From Anthoceros angustus (Eukaryota > Plantae > Anthocerotophyta), in NCBI GenBank assembly GCA_010909165.1, contig MU008185.1, positions 434,001 to 498,000 on the forward strand: a stretch of 64,000 nt of DNA, given 5' to 3'. Numbering within the stretch: the first letter of the stretch is position 1; each line of letters opens with the position of its first letter. The notes under the pieces are model-generated. The model saw only the letters and a program-made list of their open reading frames with translations, did no database searches and was not told the DNA's origin. Position numbers and translations under genes: made by a program. Shown in pieces: positions 2,434 through 53,269 of this stretch.

Positions 2434-3870
2434 ATGAGGAAGAAGCTAGATACCCGTTTCCCGGCGGTGAGTTGCGCAGAGATTTTCCCCCATTGTGCTG
2501 TCCATCGACCATTCGAAGTGGAATTTTCGACAGCCAGGCTTGATGTGTGTCTGCATCTTGTTTTGTGCACAGGCTCGTATAAAGAAGATCATGCAGGCCG
2601 ATGAGGAAGTAGGGAAGATTGCATTGGCAACTCCCGTCCTTATTTGTAAGTCCACCGAGTCTCTTGCTTTTCTGAATCCCGAGTCATTTGAGGGGATCTC
2701 CAGCTAATTGGCTTCTGGGCTGCAGCTAAGGCTCTGGAGCTTTTTTTGCAAAGACTGTGTGACAAGACGGCCCAGATCACCTTGAAGAGGGGAGCCAAGA
2801 CTATGAGTGCGCTCCATTTGTAAGCATTACCCTTGTTTATTCTCTCGTCTCTTTTGTGCTCAAGGGTGCCGGCTCTAGTAATGTGTTCCCCACTCGCAAT
2901 GCATCATTGAAGTCTCGTTGTGAATGCTTTGTGGGCTTTCTGTTGGCAGAAAGCAATGCGTACAGTCAAACAGCGTGTTTGACTTCTTACAAGAAATTGT
3001 TTCTAAGGTTCCAGACATTACAACTGATGCCAATGTAGAGGAGAAGCACACTGGCAAAAGGAGGTACCTTTTATATCCTGTGACATGCCATTTGCCCCGT
3101 GATGGTTCATGGTAGGCTTCTCTGATTTTTTCTTTCGGCTTAGCAGCTTGTTGCACATGGTTGCAGAAAAGCAGTAGATGGAGATAGCAACGACAGTGAG
3201 GAGGAGGAGGCTGTTAAACGGCCGAAATCTGTGAGTCCTGGATCTCGTAGATTGTTAGGTTGTGTGGTTGATGCGTTAGGAGTACCTTTTGGTTGCTTTT
3301 AGCGCTGGTGCATTTCTCTGTTGTGGGTTTGTTTGTCCTTAACTCTTGTCATTCTGATTGATTCAGGAGTCGCAACCAGCACCTGGTAGAGGTCGCGGTA
3401 GAGGCAGGGGAAGAGGCCGGGGGAGGAATGGTGCGAGAGAGAGACATGGACCGGGAGTTGACAAGACTGAAGAAGCAGAGCTGGACAGCTGCGCACAAGA
3501 AGCGGAGAAGAGAAAAGGATCTGCTACTGTGAAGAGAGAGGAAGTTGAGAGCAGAGAACCTTCGCACCTTGAATCTCTGAAGTCTCAAGCAAGAAATTTT
3601 GACCTGAACAGGGAACCTGATGAGAATGAGGAGGTAGCACCAGCACCAGATGTGAAAGTAGAACATCCAAAGGGCTGGTCTCAAAACGAAGTCGAAGACG
3701 TAGACACGCAGGTAGATGTGGATAGGGATTCAGAAACCCAGACACAGGTAGATGAGGGTGACGTTGATATAGTTAACCCTGTGGATTTGGAGAGCCTGCA
3801 GTTACAACTGGCCCAAGAAAGGCAACAACTCGAGGATGACTATGATTGTGAAGATGATGAAGATGGTTGA
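2434..3870 (+). CDS. DRAP1: NC2 alpha / Dr1-associated corepressor (histone fold), about 6 exons
   Basis: Spliced reading: MRKKLDTRFPA (2434-2466) / ARIKKIMQADEEVGKIALATPVLI (from 2573) / KALELFLQRLCDKTAQITLKRGAKTMSALHL / KQCVQSNSVFDFLQEIVSKVPD. The last exon has an RG repeat, FDLNREP and an acidic tail, with TGA at 3868-3870. Introns are GT-AG. Confidence 0.93.
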
Positions 3871-4024
3871 ATCTCTTGTCTTCTTTCTTCAGCCATTCTT
3901 TACCCCCAATTGTAACATAGTGCGTCTTAAACATAAAAAGCTCAAAATTGGGACATCAAGTTAACCTATTTGGACCAACGCTTGTCGGAGAAGGGGTAAC
4001 CGAATCCGGTACCGATGAACTAGG

Positions 4025-4088
4025 TGTAAGGAACCATCTGCATGTGTGCAATTGTTTGTAAGGAACCATCTGCATGTGTGCAATTGTT
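4025..4088. repeat. Perfect 32-bp direct tandem duplication
   Basis: tgtaaggaaccatctgcatgtgtgcaattgtt occurs twice in tandem. Confidence 0.9.
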
Positions 4089-4433
4089 TTTTTGTTTGCA
4101 AATCGGCAGGTTGTATATTATGATACTCTCTTTCTTTTTGTGTAGGTAATCAATAGGTTGTACAGGTATTAAGTAAGCGTAAACAAATGCTTCAACTAGT
4201 ACAAAGGGGCAAAGCCAGACTCAGCACCATATGATAGCGGGGCATAAAAACAATTGGCCACGCCCAACAAACTACCAAGAAGATTCATATACAAAAAAAG
4301 TAACCTTGCAAGAACCCAAGCCGCCCTTGGCTACAAATAGAATGTAGAGAAAAGCCAACAGCCCATTAAGGAGCAGGGAAGCCAAGGTGGACCAAAGCTG
4401 GCAAAATGCCTTAAGAGAGCTAAAAAAGCCAAC

Positions 4434-4529
4434 AAAGTGCCTACAAGAGAGCGAAAAAAGCCAACGAAATACCCGCAATAGAGCGAAAAAAGCCCACAAA
4501 ATGCCTACAATAGAGCGAAAAAAGCCAAC
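4434..4529. repeat. Imperfect ~33-bp tandem repeat, 3 copies
   Basis: Units resemble aaatgcctacaatagagcgaaaaaagccaac. Confidence 0.75.
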
Positions 4530-5241
4530 AGCCCCTGTAATGAGTAGGAAACCAAGGCGTACCAAAGCTCGCAAAACCCACTTGGAATACAAGAATCCGT
4601 TTCAAACTCCAATCCAAAACCACCCCTACAAGCCACTTGGAGAAGTGTCACCAAAACCGCTTAAGGGATCCAGGAGGCACCACAACATAAAAAAAAACAA
4701 ATAGCCATATTGTTATATTAGATATATGTTTTTTTTGAAATTTTATTATTCTAAATAAGAAAATACCTATTTATATGTTTTGGTTTCTATTTCAATAATT
4801 TAGACAACTAACAACTTGTGACGTCCTTCCTTGAGGAGTGACACTTTAGCCAAGAGTTCTCATTAGAACTTCGTGGATAAACACTCCTTAGCTTGACCTT
4901 ATGGTCAGATCACTATCAAGATGGGGTATTGCACCCATCCCCGATTACTCTGAGCCCTTGGTGGATTGCCTATTATGAAGCCCTTTGGGGCCGCCCGGCT
5001 CAAATACAAGCTTTTATAAGCCCTTTTTTAGCGTTTAAAAAAAATTCAGATTAATCATGAGATTGTGATACAAGATGGCCTAGAAAAGTCTAGGGACACC
5101 TTGCTAAGGCTTGGGATAAACCACTTCAAGCCCCATTAAGGAGCATACTACTAAATGCAATGGTGGTCGAAGAAGACATTGTATCTTTAACAACCAAGGA
5201 CTCAGAAACCAAGCGCTGAGACAGCTAGAACTCCAGCAGTG

Positions 5242-5543
5242 CCATTGTAAGCCCCTTAGGGGATGCCTAATTCGATTGTAAGCCCCTTAGGGGATGCCTA
5301 ATTCCATTGTAAGCCCCTTAGGGGATGCCTAATTCCATTGTAAGCCCCTTAGGGGATGCCTAATTCCATTGTAAGCCCCTTAGGGGATGCCTAATTCCAT
5401 TGTAAGCCCCTTAGGGATGCCTAATTCCATTGTAAGCCCCTTAGGGATGCCTAATTCCATTGTAAGCCCCTTAGGATGCCTAATTCCATTGTAAGCCCCT
5501 TAGGGATGCCTAATTCCATTGTAAGCCTTAGGGATGTCTAATT
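5242..5543. repeat. 31-bp minisatellite, about 10 copies
   Basis: CCATTGTAAGCCCCTTAGGGGATGCCTAATT repeated head-to-tail with no spacers; later copies lose G or C in the homopolymers. Confidence 0.95.
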
Positions 5544-22232: not shown

Positions 22233-24808
<2,576 letters not shown>

Positions 24809-25366
24809 TAGGCGTCTGCACGCGTCCACCTGACACCCCATTACTTGTTCTGCTGAACTCTGTTTTGCATAACCTTGGGATCCTGAACCACCTGCCTGAT
24901 GGCACTCCTAGATTATCAAGTACACGCCGATGTCGTCCAAGTTAGAGAAGCGACGGCTGTACTGAGGAATCATGTTCCTGACATGCTGCAGGTGAGCAGA
25001 CATGTAGCAAATACCTGAGACGTAACTGGGCCCAAGCCCGAGAGTGAAATGCGATGATGTACTGAGGGCATACGTTCCCGGTGTGAACTCCACGATGTCC
25101 TTTCTTGCATACGGCGCCGTAGACTCTCTTGCCCGGCACCTGTACGCGTACCGCCGAAGTAGGCGTGACGAGGTGGAAGTGGGTAAGCCTGTTGATTGCC
25201 TCGTAGACGGCGCCTTCTCGTCCGCGACCCGGATCCCGGACACCCGGGCCCTCTGCACTCCCGCCACCTTCCCCGCTAAACGCTCCGACGCGCCGTGTCT
25301 GCGTGGCGCTGCGTTACTCTTCATTCCGCCTCCAATCCTCTGCCTCGCGCCCGCTCGCTCGCGGTC

Positions 25367-25947
25367 ATGGCGCGCACGTTTTGCGTTTTGCTCGCTGTGG
25401 CCCTCGCTGCCGCCGCGCTCCTGTCCACCAGCGATGCTCGGCCGCTCCCGCTCTCCCTCGGTGCGTTGCGTTGCGTTGCGTTTCGTGCTATGCTGTCTCA
25501 AGTGTGAAGCCAGTCCTCTGATGACTTGCGTCTGCTGTCACTTGTCGTGAGATTCGATGCGTGTTCGACTGTCTCTGGATCGGGAAATGCCAATCCGTCT
25601 GCTGACTCCTAGCATAGTACATGCCGGCATGTTTTGTGCCAGGGGTCGGAATTGGTGAGCAGCTGGCCGTGAGTCGAAGAGCGCTTGGCTACGATGAGGA
25701 GGAGGTATTGAATGATTTGAAACTGCAGCTTGTTGCGTGTTTCTGTGTCTGAAGGAACTGTTTCACGGCTCTTGAATCCTTTTGTGTTCTGCATCTGCTG
25801 CAGCAACGAAGGGAGTTGGTGTACCACCTCGACTATGTGGATCCCAATCCTAATAACAATCCGACCGTGAGTGCCCCGGTCGCCGTCGTTTTCCCCTCGC
25901 CTCCACCACCGGCTGTCGTCAGACGGTATCCCCAGATCGATCCCTGA
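25367..25947 (+). CDS. Small secreted peptide precursor (99 aa), PSY/PSK-like tyrosine-sulfated peptide candidate; exons 25367-25460, 25643-25704, 25804-25947
   Basis: Phase-consistent GT-AG splicing gives MARTFCVLLAVALAAAALLSTSDARPLPLSLGVGIGEQLAVSRRALGYDEEEQRRELVYHLDYVDPNPNNNPTVSAPVAVVFPSPPPPAVVRRYPQIDP*. It has a signal peptide, an acidic patch, a dibasic site and a DY motif. Confidence 0.8.
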
Positions 25948-26301
25948 TGCGCGGCGTTTGGCTGCATCGGCAGCGGCATATAAGGTTGTATTCTAGAGTA
26001 TGCCCTTCAAGCATAGGATTTCGCGTGCTGGAGCTTCATGCCAACATGCGCAGTCCGGGTCCAAGTGTATGACAGTGTGCAGCTATCAATTTTGAGAGTT
26101 GGATTGTACATTACTATGTAGTAAAATTCTTCTAGCCAAGTTGGCAGTGCAGGATCTGATTCAGAGGGGATCGCCCTACTGAAGGAAACGACCAAAAGTC
26201 ACGTGCCTGATAGTCCTACACTACGGAGAAAATGGCAGCTTCATAACACGCAAGCGACGCGAACGAATCTGGACTGGCCTCCATTATGTTTCCACTGTGT
26301 G

Positions 26302-28654
26302 TCAACTTGCCAAACTCTTGCTACTCTGCCGTCCAAATTGGATCACCATGGGTCTCTCCTTGAGCTTGTAGCCATTGACCAATTCCAGAGCATCTTTCGA
26401 TGCTTGCAGATCTGATTGAAAACTAGTTGGTTAGATGAAATATCTGACGCACTCCAATAGCACAGATATGGCTTTTTATCGTGGTCAGCGCATATATCCT
26501 GCAGCCCAGTTCCCACGCCCGAGGGAAAAGGACAGAAAAAACCTAAAAACTCTAGGAGGATATCTTGGGCCACACATTTTGAGTCCAGCTTGCAAACAAC
26601 ACCACGTTCACATTTGGCACAAGAGTGAGTTGCTCAAGAATGGGTTTGTACCTGGAAATGTTATAAAAGCTTGTCCTTTCATACGGCCTCTTTGCATGAG
26701 CCGGAACGTGAGGTGCTGTCCCGGTCTCTGATATCGAATGAACAGTGCCACAAGATCCTGCTCAGTGACTTGAGGAGAGAGATTCTTGATGTACAACGTC
26801 TGCAGGAGAAATACAAGTGAGAATGGTACCTTCAAGAACTGCCATCTAGGTTGCACAACTGTCCTTAGCTTGGACGCTAGCAGACCATTCAGATTTTTAT
26901 ACAAAAAGCTGGTGATGAAACAGGGTACAAGGCATCTCACATCAGAAGGTTGCCCAGGAGCATAATTGCTGAACTTGCCACCAGCCAGCTGCTTGATTTC
27001 AGCTTCTTGTAAACGGTTTTGCAGTATGCAACTTAAAGGCACTTCCTCCACTTCCATCTTAGCTGTCGATTCATGTTCAGAAGACGGCCCTGACTTCTCC
27101 GGGATTTTCAAATCACTGTTCCCATTGCCATCCTCGCCCCCGTTACATGATGTTTCCCCAGTACTCGCTTGTGTTGAGACAGCCTCCTCTTTCATCTGCT
27201 GCACATACGAGTGCAAGTCCAGAACAGGTGGAGCTGGACTTCTGAACACCTGAGTTACTGGTCGATACAGCTTCTCCTCAGCAGCGTGCCTAGCTCGCTC
27301 CTGAGTGGTGCCGTCAGCAGCAGGTTTAGTTCAAAATCTTGCAGCAATGTCCAACATGAAATCAAAAGTGGCTTGATCACTAGAAACGGACAAGCAACCT
27401 GAGGAGTTAGATTGTGGTGTAAGTCATCATCTTCAGCGTGGCTAAGAAGTGGTCTCCGTGGATGGATATCTGGACATTTGACGCAAGAAGAGGATCAGGC
27501 CAGAGGTGACGCAGTAGAGCAGCCCTCAGCAAGGTGTCAAAATGGCGAAACAAGTTCTTACCCTTAGCAGACAAGTGAGCTATCTGTCGAACCACGTCCT
27601 TGCCAAGTTGCACTGAGGATTCGATCTCCCTTTCATGTCTGGAAGAAAGCTCATCCAATTCTGCCTCATGGCAGTCATCTGCCTTTTTGCGCACCCTGCA
27701 GGCCGCTTCGTTTTCAACTGGTTGCACGGTCCTTGCAAAATCAGGATGTGGTCCATATCTCTTGCGTTTCAGTCCCTGCAAGAAGAATACACATAGACAT
27801 ATAAGAAATACGAGGTACCAAAGCATTGCAGCTCCGAAAGTCATGAGGGAAGACAGTCCAAAGCACAAACCTTCTCACGATCAGAGACGGAAGTGCTTAA
27901 TTTTTGAAAGTGATCCCTGTCAGACCCCAGGACATGATCTCTGATCAGCCAGTGAAGTACAGCAAATGCCTGGAAGGTGCGACATCACCACACAGGAATG
28001 AAAAGGATACTCAGCTGAACAAATCATCCGCACCTCCATCAACAAAGCCAGTAGATGGCAGAAACTTAAACATAAACCTTTACCCTTACTTGATTTGAGC
28101 ATCAGACAAGCCTTGAGCATGCAGTGCATGAGCCTTCGAGTTCTGCTGCTTTCTGTTTATCTCACTCTTACAAAACTGAGCATGACTAGCAATGCCCGAT
28201 GAGGAGTGACCAACGCAAAGCAAAGTCTCTGTGGCTTGTTTGAAATCAACCCTCTCAAGTCTGCTGCCAGAAAACTTACGACTTAGATGTAATCAAAATA
28301 TTTAGGTTTGAAACACGCAACTTTCCTCCAAATTTTCCGACTCTGAGCTCTAGCTGCAACAGGACACTGAGACTAGGGTTTTTCCGGTCAACATTTCAAC
28401 TGCCCACCAAAATGCCACCCTTCACCGAAAGACCAGGTAGCATTTCATCCCAAGGCTTCCTTACCAGCCCACTGATCGACCAACACCTCTGATTGAAACC
28501 CCACAAGCTCCGACGAAGCAGAGGCACTCCAACGAAGCCAGAAAACGCACCTTCTAGAAGTGGACAGCTGCTTGTGCAGCAGATGTTGCAGAGTTAACTC
28601 CGCTTGCGAGATAACATTTTCCAAGGGCCCCTCGTCGTCGGCCGACCAGGCCAT
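26302..28654 (-). CDS. RBM41: RBM41-like RRM protein (paralogue of U11/U12-65K), multi-exon
   Basis: N-terminus LENVISQAELTLQHLLHKQLSTS and LHAQGLSDAQI. C-terminal part KFSNYAPGQPSD/TLYIKNLSPQVTEQDLVALF...RLMQRGRMKGQAFITFP/..ALELVNGYKLKERPMVIQFGR. Only one RRM was seen. Confidence 0.8.
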
Positions 28655-38050: not shown

Positions 38051-40757
38051 TCAGACTTTGGAGGAGATGGAGTGAGTGTCGGTGACGTCCCCCGGCGGCT
38101 TTTTGCTCTCGACTGCCTGCATGGCGAAGAACTCAGAGATGACCTCAAGCGGCCAGCCCTTGGTTTCCGGCACCTTGAGGAGGACAAACACCCAGGCGAT
38201 GACGGTGACGAGGGCGAAGATGCAGAAGACACCTTCCAGGCCCAGCTCTCGGTTGAGCACCGGGAAGGAGTAGGTGACGATGATGTTGCACACCCACATG
38301 GCAGCTTGGCACATGCCGATGCACAGCCCTCGCACCCGGGTTGGGAAGATCTCGGAGCACATGATGTTGGGGATGGGCCCGAATCCCATCACGAAGGCAC
38401 AGGTGAAAACCGCCACCCCGGCAAACGAGATGGCTGCCTGCACCAGCCCGGGTGTGAGTACGGAGTTGCTGATCACCACGCATATCAGCGCCAGCGCCAG
38501 GAGCGGCAACGTTGCCAGGAGCAGCTGCCTGCAATGCGTGCAAGTAGCAACATTTCTCAGCTGCTAGTTAGATGTTCACAGGGACATGGAAGCTTAGATA
38601 GCTCTGGGGAACCAGTCGATTGCGGTTGGAATCACTCAGCTGTAGTCAAGAAGGGAAACAGTGAGATGATTACCTGCGGCCTGCGCGGTCCATGAGTCGC
38701 ATAGCCAGCACAATGCACGGGAGCATCAACAAGCAGGTGACACCGCTGGCGAGGATGGATGCAGAGTCGGCCCCGACGCCGATTCGTGCGAGCAGCACCT
38801 CGGCACCGGATGCCTGCAGGATTTGGGGCGTGAAGTAGAGCACCGCGTTGATGCCGGAGAACTGCAGAAACGCAGAAAAGAATTGCGATCAGATTGTGGA
38901 ACGAAGAAGCCTTGCAAAGAGAGAGAGGTCTGTGGTGAATTATAATACCTGCTGCAGGATCTGCAAGCCGAGGCCGACGAAGAGCGCTCGGCGCACGCCG
39001 GGGACGAGCAGGTCTCGCCAGGAAGGGCCGGACACGGTTTCCAAAGGATGCGCCACGGCGGGGCCGTTGCTGTGCTCGGCGCTGAGGATCTGCGCGGGCT
39101 GGCTGACGAGCGCGGCGGCCTGGAAGGCCTCGACCTCGCCGATGCCGGGGAGGGAGAGCGTGGAGCCGGCATGGGAACTCATGGCTCGGACGGGCTCGGA
39201 CAGGAGGTAGACTCGCTGCAGGCTCCCGCCGTCGTGGGGTCGGAGCCGGGCTTGGCGTCGGGCGCGGGGTCCATCGCCAGGCCAGCTGCCACCCGCTCCC
39301 GATGTTGCCCACGCTGCTGAGGGATTCGGGGAGGCTGGTGCCGGGGTTGAAGCCGGATCCGGGATTGGAGTTGTTCGGGACCTGGCCGTGGGCCGTCCAC
39401 ACGGGCTGGATGTCCCCGGGCGCGTGCCAGGCGTGTCCGTGCCGGGAGTCCTTCCTCTGCAGCGGCGATGGCGGGAAGAAATTCGCGGAGCTCCGGCGGG
39501 AGAGCGCGCATGGGCCCGGCAGATCCAGCCTCCCGCTGGAAGGCCGGGAGAGGAGGAGCGGCGTCTTTAGGTTGTCGTCCCCCTCCCCGGTGAGGTTGTC
39601 GTCGGAGAAGTAGCCGATTGCGTTGTGGTTCGGTTCCTCGTCCCACTCCTGGATGAGGTGGTCCTGGAGGGAGCCGATGACGGTCACGACGGGATCTATG
39701 AGCGGCCGGCCCTGGCCTGGCTCCATGCTTGCCTTCCGGGAGAGGAGACGCTGCGGCTCCGTCTCCTCCAGAATCGGGTGGCGAATCCAGGCGAAGGCTT
39801 GGTGCTGATCCTGGAGGGTGTGGAATGTGCCGGTGCCTGTGCCTGTGCCGTCGTCTCCTGCGGATTCCACGTCTGCGACAATCTCCGGGTGGAGCAGCCA
39901 TTCCTCCAGCCGGCTGCTCTGCACCACGCCCAGGCCCTCCACCAGCAGGGCCAGCTCCGCGGCCACGTCCTCGGTGCCGCGGAGGTCCTGGAGCACCATT
40001 TTCGCCTCCAGCATGCGGCCCTTGGACACCAGCCAGCGGGGGGACTCCGGGAGGTACAAGAGCGCGAAGAGGAGGAAGACGAGGGACGGCAGCAGGATGA
40101 TGGCCAGCATGAACCTCCAGTTCGGGTCGGCCGTGAGGGACACCACGAACACCATAGCGTAGGCGACGAAGAGGCCCCCCGACCCCATGAGCTGCGGGAG
40201 CGTGGAGAGCTGGCCTCGGATCTCGGGAGGCGAGGACTCCGCGATGTGGATGGGGCTGATGGTGGAGGCCAGCCCGATGCTGCACCCAATGAGCACGCGC
40301 GCCAGGATGAGCACGTACACGTCCGGGGACCAGGCCATGACGCAAGCCCCGATGGAGAAGAAGAAGGCGGACACCACCAGCATGCTGCGCCGGCCCAGCC
40401 AGTCCGCCGCCGGGCCTGCGCATGTGGTGCTGCTCACGGCCCCGATCAGGGTGGAGGCCACCACCAGGCCCTCCAAGGTGGGATTGTTTTCAAGATTGAA
40501 TTCCGGCTTGATGTAGAGCAGCGCCCCTGGCACACAACAACACTCCGTTCAAGATTCAAGACAGGACGGGAAGGGAAGGGAAGGGAAGGAAAGGAAATTG
40601 CAGCAAACAAACACGCAAGCCTTTGAAAGCTTTGGAAACGATTTGAAGAGGAAATGAAAAAAGGATGCTGACCAGCGATGGCGGCACTGTCCCAGCCTTG
40701 GAGCATGTTGCCGATGGTGGCTGCAAGCGCCACGGTCCGGGCCCCCTTGGACCTCAT
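38051..40757 (-). CDS. TST: Tonoplast monosaccharide/sugar transporter (TMT/TST, MFS), with apparent frameshifts near 39236-39269
   Basis: ATIGNMLQGWDSAAIA/GALLYIK, ADWLGRR, PPEIRGQLSTLPQ, LPESPRWLVSKGRM, long central loop with IGSGWQLAWRW and QAAALVSQPA, GLQILQQ/FSGINAVLYF, GFGPIPNIMCSEIFPTRVRG, KVPETKG. Confidence 0.95.
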
Positions 40758-44809: not shown

Positions 44810-47800
44810 CTACACAGTAACTCGAGGGGTGTCTGGAACTTGGTAGTTCTTTTGTCTCTCTCCGTTCATTAAGTCTTGCTGTGAGACAATACCACACAAC
44901 GGGGGTCAACTTCCAGCACAACCCACTTTACTGACAAGCAAAGGGAAAGGACTTCAGTAAGGAACCACAACTGTTTACCTCCGACGGTGCCCTCGCTTCG
45001 AACAGGGTAATTGACTTTAGATCCCAATTTAAGCCACTGTAACCCCGACAACATCAGACACGGGATCTACCAGGGACACGTCTCAAAAGAACATTGCAGA
45101 CGGATCTCTAAGCCACGGGGACTCACCTGTGAGCTACTACGAGTTGCCAGACATAAGGGACGAAAAACTCCTCCGGGTGCAGCTCCTCCTCATACGTGAA
45201 CCTCAATTGCGTGAAAGTCTGAGATACTCACAACAGTGTCAAGATAAGAAGATAGAAATACCAGCGATAGCAACACATCTCAGCAATCTGTTTAGCCAAA
45301 CCTTCATTCCATCTCCTCGCCAAGACCTTGTATTTGCAACAACTAATTGCAATACTCTCTCGACTGACCATTCCCCATTCAGGTGTTGGTCATCCATTCG
45401 TACATTGAAAAACTCCAGAACCTGAAGCAGCATCGGCCTCTTCATGAGCACACACGCCAGCAGCATGATGAGGGGCCCAACAAGAGATGACAGGAATGTA
45501 CCAACCGTGAATATGTTCTCCAACAGCTCATAAAAACGAGGATGGTCCCGGAGTGGTAGAAAGAGTTCCTGTCTGTGTAGCAAAGCGTACACAACCTGCC
45601 CAAGAGGAGGTTAACAGGCCAAATAGATATGTTAAGTATTCGCAAGCAATTTTAAATACATAACTTCAATCCAATGTAGACAAAGATGCCAGATGAAACA
45701 ACTAACCTCTGGATTCCGAGGCAACGCGTAAGTGAGAATGGCATTGATAATCTCCAAAACGATACGAAGAAAATCTGTATAGATATGCAAATCCGTAGGC
45801 TGCATACACAAGGCTCAGTCAGTAACCAGCAATCACGAACCTTCAAAGTGTCGGAGCATTTTGCAATTTTCAAACCAAATTTGTTGTCCTACCTGCAGTC
45901 CCAAAGAGGGGTGAAAAACTGCAGTTTATGGGAGACATACCAGGTCCTCAGTCGGACTGCTGTCTGCCTGTCCTATCCTCAGTGACGCCAGCTTGACTGT
46001 CGTAGCAGACTCTGCTAATCTTGCATATCTATAAGTGCATGATAGTCATTGTTAGGAGAAGAAACAACGATCAGTTAAATATAAACTAACTGTGCATAGA
46101 AGCCGAAATGAAGTTCTTGATGAAAGACTGACATACTTTCGAGCAAGCATGTCGAACAGGCTCACAAGCCTCTGGGAAGCATATGCATTCAGCTGGTGCA
46201 CATGCGGTGCCATATTTGCTAGGGTTGCAAGACAATTGGTATAAACATACACATCCTTCACATATACACAGCTGCCTATCAGTAAGCGAAGAGCAAATCA
46301 TTTGAGAGAAATGATCTGAAAGAAACTGCCATCCTTACCCTAAGTTTTGACAGGTTGTACTTTACAGTCCTAATAAGAATCACCACAAGCAGTGACCCGA
46401 GAGAGATATTCGGTAGAAGGCGTTCCTTGTACCATGCCACACCAGGAAGTATCTACATATGACAAATGATTTGTTAATATACTAGTAACCTCATTTTGCA
46501 TGGAGGTCTTGCCATAGAAACCAGAATGCCAACCCAAGACGCCACATCACAGAAATAATGTGATTAAAACAAGCTGAGTTAGAGAAGAGCTAACCAATTT
46601 GTGTATGCTTGCGTTGAACGAAGCATCCTGGCTGAGAATCAAGAGGGTAATGAGCAGCATGTATATTTGGTTTGGCGTTCGGCGTGGGGCATTATACAGC
46701 ATCTCTAAAACTGGCATCAGCTGCACCACACAACCACGGATATTCACACAAGCAGGAAGCAACCAACACGGTGCAAAAAGAACCGGAACACAACAAGAGC
46801 AAAACACACCATACCAGAGTATCCAAATCTGTTCGGACGAGCACATATTCTAGAAATGTTGGATTTCCATGAACCAGAGAATATAACAGTAACGTTGACC
46901 GGTCGTCAAGTAAACACCTGCAATGAACAGCATAAAGTGAAGCTGCCATCCCAGACAAGTTGAACAATCACATAGAGCAATTTGAAAGCATAACAACCTG
47001 TGCATGGGTGAAGCGACTTACACTCCAAGTGTGTCGTAAAGAGCAGAAAATGGAACCCTAACCAGACCAGCATAAGCCTCCAAGTCACCAACCTCAACTG
47101 CATAAGTTGATGCAAAATATCAATATCTTAGTGAGGAGAGCAGTGCACAGAGAAATGCAAAGCCTCCTCCATCAGCCAGGTCGTGGTGCACAGATTTGAG
47201 ACCATTTGTTATGACCGCTAAAAAAGAAAAGAAGAGAACAGATGCTGCACGACCATGTGCACTATTAAAGCAACATAGCAACCAGGATTGAAGGACGCAC
47301 ACTCTCTGTCTCTTGCTGTCTCCAATGCCTGCCGATAAGGATTTGACTGCATTGCAACTGTCCCAGCCACAAGGGCATTGTCGTCTCTATCAACTTTATC
47401 TGGGTCTTCAATTGGCAAAGTCTTTCCATAGTGCACTAGAACTAAAAGCAGCAAGAGGCTGTTATCTGATAAAGGGCTTTTCGAAACATCTGCATTCGAC
47501 TTCACCAGGTGACTGTATGTGTAGGACGGTAATAGGAACATAGTAGCTGCAAGTTCAATCCTTGAATCAGACTATGCACCTCTTTGTATCATGTAAACAT
47601 AACACAGACTGTGTACTAGATCAACACCAGCATGAACTGAACACATCCCAAATGAGCATATCAGTTGGTCTTCCTTCAATCAGCATACCAGCTGCTGTGC
47701 TCACTCGCCGTAAAACTCCTGACTGCTTGCCCCTATAGAGTGGTGTGTACTCTGCTGCCTCTGCAGGTAGAGGCAGCCTTGCTATGTAGGACAGAAGCAA

Positions 47801-52560: not shown

Positions 52561-53269
52561 TTTACAAGGCTGCCTTGAGACTTGGGGATTAGACAGGCAA
52601 GAGTCGGTGAAACGGTTTGTCCACTTCATAAATTTTGTTTGCCAAGGCCTCCAAAGGCTGTCTCACGTATGGAATCACTGCATTGGTTTTTTATCTTCAG
52701 GATGAATTTGATCTTCAGTCGACACCGTCCGAAGCTGAGCCCAAGAATGATACTAATGAAGACTAGTAAGCAATTGAGGAGAATGACAGCTTTGACGCAG
52801 AGGATATGGACCGCCCCTACTAGAAAGGGCAGCCTATGTTACAGTCGTTGTTGCAATTTTATGTTACACTTCTAACTTGCAACATCATTTGGAGGCTTGG
52901 TATTAAGTTTGTCATTTCTTTCCCCAAGTGGGCCTACAATCTTAACACGAACTGCTCTCTCTCCTACCACTTCACCCTCTTAACTACACCCCTCTCTCAT
53001 ACGCATTGTTTATGAATTTCCTCATGCAATTGCAACATGATCAGAATAGGACCTCTCTCTCTCTCTCCCGCCCCCATATTTATTACACCCCATTGGGAGT
53101 ACAATTAGTTAATGTTTTTCCTAGCGCTCTTTGCACTCTCTCTTCACAACTATTTGTTAATGGTGCCTGGACCAATATCAAGAATATGCCCATTAACATC
53201 ACCTTTAAAGGTGACCTAAACATAATATTATTTACCTATGTAAGTGGGTTCGAGGCTCACTCTATGTCT

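Follow-up and report, generated by a model that had tools for sequence, protein, structure and literature searches.

A candidate three-exon precursor gene for a divergent DY-type peptide in the hornwort Anthoceros angustus

The window analyzed here (a 64,000-nucleotide stretch of Anthoceros angustus DNA) carries, at positions 25367 to 25947 of its plus strand, a three-exon candidate precursor gene. Judged by its sequence, we consider it probable that this is a real, unannotated small hornwort gene encoding a prepropeptide of about 99 residues, i.e., a divergent precursor of the DY type (the Tyr-sulfated class), and possibly a lineage-specific variant of such peptides. The putative peptide core is nearest to PSY and the predicted pro-region is nearest to PSK, and the defining motif of neither family is present. 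The preliminary description of the locus held that the gene fits no described class cleanly, and this was borne out: by their defining motifs, the candidate would be placed outside PSY, PSYL, PSK, RGF and CIF, all of whose motifs are absent, and an exon-wise comparison with Pfam, including its PSK family, returned nothing.

Comparison against the open reading frames (ORFs) of the window confirmed that no single ORF covers the gene, as had been claimed. The 99 codons (31 + 1 split + 20 + 47 by exon-wise translation) are distributed over three exons joined in phases 1 then 0, with canonical GT-AG sites at both introns, and the coordinates first proposed for this arrangement were reproduced base for base (Table 1). 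The start ATG (25367-25369) lies in a good context (GGTC ATG GC, with G at -3 and G at +4), and the 267 nt upstream of it are GC- and CT-rich and free of ATG. Exon 1 encodes an n-region with Arg, a 16-residue hydrophobic core of Ala, Leu and Val and a c-region reading STSDA; cleavage of the signal peptide is likely after Ala24 (SDA|RP). Exon 3 encodes RRELVYHLDYVDPNPNNNP (18 residues), followed by a Pro-rich tail with SPPPP and RRYPQIDP, and the exon translations thus contain all of the segments originally listed (SDA-RP, DEEE, RRELVYHLDYVDPNPNNNP, SPPPP and RRYPQIDP). In the three-exon model, DY represents residues 62-63 of 99, i.e., it lies in the second half of the precursor, and the pro-region contains two RRxL sites of the S1P/SBT6.1 type, RRAL and RREL.

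Table 1. Coordinates of the candidate gene, its predicted parts and its flanking genes in the 64,000-nucleotide window
Feature	Position	Strand	Details	Basis
Adenylosuccinate lyase gene, last coding exon and stop	24611..24808	+		Pfam ASL_C, E 4e-17; homologues so named
Putative promoter and 5' leader	25100..25366	+	GC-rich (0.65), CT-rich, no upstream ATG	Sequence and composition; leader role presumed
Exon 1	25367..25460	+	Ends in phase 1, followed by GTGCGT; predicted signal peptide	Translation
Intron 1, 182 nt	25461..25642	+	GTGCGT to TTTTGTGCCAG; T 0.32	Predicted
Exon 2, 62 nt	25643..25704	+	AG before, GT after; pro-region with RRAL and YDEEE	Translation
RRAL, S1P/SBT6.1-type RxxL site	25675-25686	+	Exon 2	
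DEEE, acidic block	25693-25704	+	Exon 2	
Intron 2, 99 nt	25705..25803	+	GTATTG to CTGCTGCAG; T 0.39, GC 0.43	Predicted
Exon 3	25804..25947	+	AG before, TGA end; putative processing site, DY core, Pro-rich tail	Translation
RRELVYHLDY	25807..25836	+	RREL inside PSK-type context RRxLVxHxDY	7/10 identical to AtPSK4 site
Putative DY core	25831..25863	+	Fits DYxxxx[AP]N, without His	PSY motif (PMC7913133); sulfation predicted, DY rule (PMC6698702)
SPPPP in tail	25897..25911	+	Possible site of Hyp formation/arabinosylation	Sequence; modification predicted
RRM-protein gene, convergent, last exon and stop	26302..26382	-		ORF ending ...MVIQFGR...

The candidate is located in a tight gap of approx. 1.5 kb between two genes, with 558 nt separating the stop of the adenylosuccinate lyase gene from the candidate ATG and 354 nt (25948-26301) separating the candidate stop from that of the convergent RRM gene, so that the 3' UTRs of the candidate and the RRM gene must nearly touch or overlap. 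The RRM assignment comes from an RRM_1 match in the exon at 26653-26796, which we infer to belong to the same gene as the ORF in Table 1. Two long ORFs that overlap the candidate (25044-25550 on the plus strand and 24908-25501 on the minus strand) showed no match to Pfam and were taken for GC-rich open frames; their lack of a Pfam match, on both strands, is in favor of the reading as a divergent DY-peptide precursor. The window as a whole is gene-dense plant DNA, with PPR, RLK, RING, MFS and RRM genes, and in a tree built from a transporter exon, in which mosses, liverworts, lycophytes, ferns and seed plants formed well-supported clades, the window copy falls outside all of these, a placement consistent with a hornwort. 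Neighboring genes in the window differ strongly in composition, GC3 being 0.93 in the tonoplast monosaccharide-transporter-like exon at 39919-40506 (minus strand) and 0.47-0.67 in the other confirmed exons.

Of 32 aligned PSY peptides, 31 retain the D, Y, N, H and P of the motif DYxxxx[AP]NxxHxP, and PSY precursors have been searched for by a secretion signal, a length of 60 to 200 residues and a DY in the second half (PMC7913133). The candidate, with its signal-peptide-like exon 1, its 99 residues and its DY at residues 62-63, has this architecture, which argues for a divergent DY-peptide precursor. It shares D1, Y2, D4, P5 and N8 with AtPSY1 (peptide sequence DYGDPSANPKHDP), and its P7 is a residue that the motif allows. 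PSY precursors and the candidate are also alike in being secreted proteins of about 100 residues with a Pro-rich continuation and with RxxL sites in the pro-region, sites of the SBT6.1 type being present in AtPSY1-5. However, the full PSY motif was not found: DYVDPNPNNNPTV has D1, Y2, P7 and N8, with P11 in place of the His and V13 in place of the Pro. The missing His11 and Pro13 count against the divergent DY-peptide reading as well, given how strictly these residues are conserved among PSYs. A second difference from PSY is the PSK-like context before DY; a site of the RRSLVL/HTDY type occurs in no Arabidopsis PSY precursor (PMC7913133).

[quoted passage not shown] The candidate resembles PSYL in this departure; however, PSYL has a His and the candidate has none after DY, so that the PSYL motifs are absent too. 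These comparisons bear on the possibility that the gene is simply a fast-evolved hornwort PSY orthologue, which lost His and Pro after loss of the PSYR receptor clade or is recognized by a different receptor. The residues common to AtPSY1 and the candidate, the SBT6.1-type sites, the positional flexibility of H and P seen in moss PSYL and the inferred ancestry of PSY to both bryophytes and vascular plants would all suit such an orthologue. On the other hand, the whole sequence after DY is devoid of His, the RRxLVxHxDY context is reported missing from Arabidopsis PSY precursors, and neither the word-index search nor the HMMER search linked any PSY to the candidate. Overall, we regard a fast-evolved PSY orthologue as an unlikely explanation, albeit one to be taken seriously. 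With regard to receptors, Anthoceros agrestis has, according to the literature, 0 members of the At1g17230/At2g33170/At5g63930 (PSYR) clade and no RGI receptors; the lack of reported members of both receptor groups also weighs against the divergent DY-peptide reading.

The spliced structure on which that reading relies is not unique. When bare GT/AG dinucleotides were allowed, 1374 two-intron and 17 one-intron paths from ATG to stop were found, among which 297 and 7, respectively, keep the RR..DY motif. Consistent phases and GT-AG sites alone are therefore weak evidence, and exon 2 is not fixed; an alternative in-frame donor (25668|GTGAGT, hexamer at 25669-25674) lies inside exon 2, and a two-exon path (25501/25804) can also be drawn. 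The spliced model put forward at the outset thus stands as far as its splice sites and phases are concerned, which are present, but the consistency of phases and GT-AG sites carries little weight, and for the middle exon several in-frame choices exist, a feature that had gone unremarked. Splicing from the donor at 25669 would keep the frame of exon 3 and could yield a shortened isoform without RRAL and DEEE. Perfect donor-like GTGAGT hexamers occur inside two of the proposed exons, i.e., at 25669-25674 in exon 2 and at 25869-25874 in exon 3. The solid parts of the model are the exons that carry the signal peptide and DY; the middle exon is provisional. Both this non-uniqueness of the splice model and the tight 1.5-kb gap count against the divergent DY-peptide reading.

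To judge whether the features of the candidate exceed chance, expected numbers of the RRxLVxHxDY stretch were computed with residue frequencies taken from the six-frame translation. By chance, 9e-5 occurrences would be expected in the window and 0.18 in 130 Mb, and the observed copy additionally fits DYxDPx[AP]N; a chance expectation of 0.18 per genome together with this fit supports the reading as a divergent DY-peptide precursor. ATG starts on both strands of the 64 kb were also screened with a crude signal-peptide filter that required a basic n-region, a hydrophobic core of 12 residues and small residues at both -3 and -1; only 3 passed, and the start at 25367 had the top score; so rare an exon, taken with the verified sequence features, supports the same reading. 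Another start that passed the filter, at 53223 on the minus strand (MFRSPLKVMLMGIFLILVQAPLTNSC...), may represent exon 1 of a different secreted protein. Base composition changes between the proposed exons and introns, with GC of 0.58-0.70 and T of 0.18-0.24 in the exons as compared to GC of 0.43-0.53 and T of 0.32-0.39 in the introns. Moreover, GC2 is the lowest of the three codon positions in all three exons when read in the claimed frame, a pattern shared by the Pfam-supported exons of neighboring genes. Composition and codon-position GC thus suit the claimed frames, which again favors a divergent DY-peptide precursor, and the combination of motifs is statistically real, i.e., more than chance.

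These results also bear on whether there is a working peptide gene at all, or merely a chance or decayed set of ORFs in intergenic or UTR space, or a transcript that is not translated. The ease with which GT-AG paths arise by chance, the GC-rich flank, in which several reading frames stay open over long distances, and the small separation to the neighboring coding regions (only 558 nt upstream and 354 nt downstream) are compatible with such an origin. However, the coincidence of a signal peptide with the best score, an acidic block, a pair of RRxL sites and a stretch matching two independent sulfopeptide patterns from the literature would be expected far less than once per genome, all parts are intact, and the composition changes where the exon borders were proposed. 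A non-functional ORF set or untranslated transcript is, in our assessment, rather unlikely.

With regard to PSK, the preliminary description had noted a PSK-like context upstream of DY and PSY-like residues following it, and both halves of this statement hold. The SBT1.1 site of AtPSK4 reads RRSLVL/HTDY (PMC7913133). The candidate shows the PSK pro-domain pattern RRxLxxHxDY, with RRELVYHLDY identical to RRSLVLHTDY at 7 of 10 positions, and after DY it continues with the PSY-like residues, D1, Y2, D4, P5, P7 and N8 being in place. PSK precursors and the candidate are alike in having an acidic block followed by RRxLVxHxDY directly before the (in the candidate, predicted) mature peptide, and by this analogy the candidate is likely to be handled by a subtilase and TPST in the manner of PSK. 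The resemblance ends at the core: after the Asp the candidate reads YVDPN, and a regex scan found Y[IV]YT[QN] nowhere in the gene. Together with the motif comparison this agrees with the earlier statement that YIYTQ and the PSY His are both missing. In contrast to PSK, the candidate lacks YIYTQ as well as a second Tyr that could be sulfated, it has no Pfam match, and its predicted product is long and Pro-rich whereas PSK is a pentapeptide. A YVYTN sequence, i.e., that of a PSK variant, does occur at 46249 on the minus strand; it was attributed to chance, as it lies inside an ordinary exon-like ORF with no preceding Asp and no signal peptide.

Legume PSKs include the variants YVYTQ and YVYTN, with which YVDPN shares Y1, V2 and N5. 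This partial agreement, together with the AtPSK4-like processing site and the acidic stretch upstream of it, could indicate descent from a PSK-type precursor that retained its pro-domain and DY and had its YIYTQ core replaced. However, neither exon 3 nor the longer open frame gave a Pfam PSK match, two PSK residues, the second Tyr and the Thr, are missing, and there is no upstream Cys pair. Moreover, the putative PSKs of mosses and liverworts keep YIYT(S)Q and lack the Asp, which is the opposite pattern. Descent by replacement of a PSK core is quite unlikely, and the PSK-like pro-region may reflect either common descent or merely processing by the same proteases.

The two RRxL sites in the pro-region, which the preliminary description had not recorded, recall RGF6/CLEL6, an SBT6.1 substrate with the cleavage site ERRRA|L|GG, and RALF23, cleaved at RRIL| (PMC13082318). 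The RGF6/CLEL6 precursor likewise has two pro-region sites of the S1P/SBT6.1 type, and RRAL is identical in the two precursors; this match to known SBT6.1 substrates is a further argument for a divergent DY-peptide precursor. The RGF peptides themselves, in which D1, Y2, P10 and N13 are accompanied by highly conserved P5, H8 and P9 (PMC8329595), are different: the candidate shares only D1, Y2 and P5 with the RGF/GLV/CLEL motif and lacks H8, P9, P10 and the C-terminal Asn13. RGF was also not found in eight hornworts (PMC8329595). Hornwort CIFs, on the other hand, have been found with the pattern DYxxxxPxPPLxxPxPF; the candidate resembles CIF/TWS1 in being a Pro-rich DY peptide, but this pattern had no regex match in it. 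Common to the substrates of the plant tyrosylprotein sulfotransferase (TPST) is DY, the Asp before the Tyr being needed and acidic neighbors being helpful (PMC6698702). The candidate has a DY with flanking D/E residues, a point in favor of a divergent DY-peptide precursor, in which this Tyr may be sulfated. It is very improbable that the gene encodes a small, extensin-like (hydroxyproline-rich) protein secreted to the cell wall in which DY is incidental, as the signal peptide and the Pro-rich C-terminal half with one SPPPP, which would suit it, come with only a single SP4 unit, no repeats and no Tyr cross-link motifs, and with an RRxL just before DY that is typical of processed peptide ligands.

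Relatives of the candidate were sought exon by exon or with single open frames, each separately. No match was found to Pfam, including the PSK family (PF06404), at E values up to 10 with any exon or with a 64-residue open frame; when the 64-residue open frame containing exon 3 was compared with a word index, no candidate emerged; PDB sequences gave no match, the ESM Atlas gave no usable match, and none of 600 pattern matches in metagenome contigs was confirmed. The sole HMMER match against 1.84 billion representatives (P0001) is a 577-residue tandem-repeat artefact that scored via 10 stretches, and it was rejected as a relative. As a control, ten ORFs of the window were found to be missing from the protein collection, and even the well-conserved tonoplast sugar-transporter exon had a best identity of no more than 72%. 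Neither the species nor its close kin are therefore in the databases, and the blank searches say nothing on the reality of the gene; the failure to find a relative counts against the divergent DY-peptide reading subject to this same gap in database coverage.

A synteny route was tried via the adjacent adenylosuccinate lyase gene, the homologues of whose last exon were at most 65% identical. Within the range of lengths covered, bacterial or metagenomic fragments with approx. 63% identity matched this exon best, and the collection contained no near-identical plant sequence. One long, plant-like Logan contig (L001, SRR33208241) was rejected as not syntenic since it has a different downstream neighbor and only 350 nt of space. 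This eukaryotic contig carries an adenylosuccinate lyase gene that is likewise divided into small exons (3543-5318), followed by a gene of 895 residues and then by SNF2/chromo exons.

If the candidate is a divergent DY-peptide precursor, a maturation pathway can be proposed from its parts. The signal peptide would be removed near Ala24, and TPST in the Golgi would sulfate Tyr63, helped by the nearby acidic DEEE and by D65. A subtilase similar to S1P/SBT6.1 would then cleave both RRxL sites, RRAL and RREL, in the manner known from RGF6/CLEL6 and RALF23, and the N-terminus would be trimmed to Asp62, as seen for PSK4 (RRSLVL|HTD) and for RGF6 (just before DY). Ser-Pro4 motifs are known targets of Hyp formation and arabinosylation, and the prolines of the candidate could accordingly be hydroxylated and perhaps arabinosylated. 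The released peptide would be approx. 13 to 20 residues long, would start with DYVDPNPN and would bind an LRR receptor kinase.

How the four sulfated-peptide families originated is a matter of dispute. BLAST-based surveys place PSY and PSK only from seed plants onward (PMC13074997), whereas motif-based work found both in mosses and liverworts (PMC8462819). For hornworts, reports are limited to CLE, IDA and CIF peptides (PMC10638237; PMC8462819), CIF being the only sulfated-peptide family reported so far from Anthoceros. A more far-reaching proposal, which we consider highly doubtful, is that the candidate represents an undescribed hornwort family of sulfated peptides perceived by a non-PSYR receptor, with a precursor that unites a PSK-type processing context and a PSY-type N-terminal core, and a living intermediate that would point to a single ancestral DY-peptide gene for the PSK and PSY precursors. 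Short multi-exon peptide genes escape searches of annotated proteomes, as the candidate illustrates. If the gene is expressed, it would add a sulfated ligand to the hornwort lineage and pose a clear receptor question, the PSYR and RGI clades being reported missing in hornworts; it would also provide a concrete sequence with which to test whether PSK and PSY precursors are kin or merely have processing enzymes in common.
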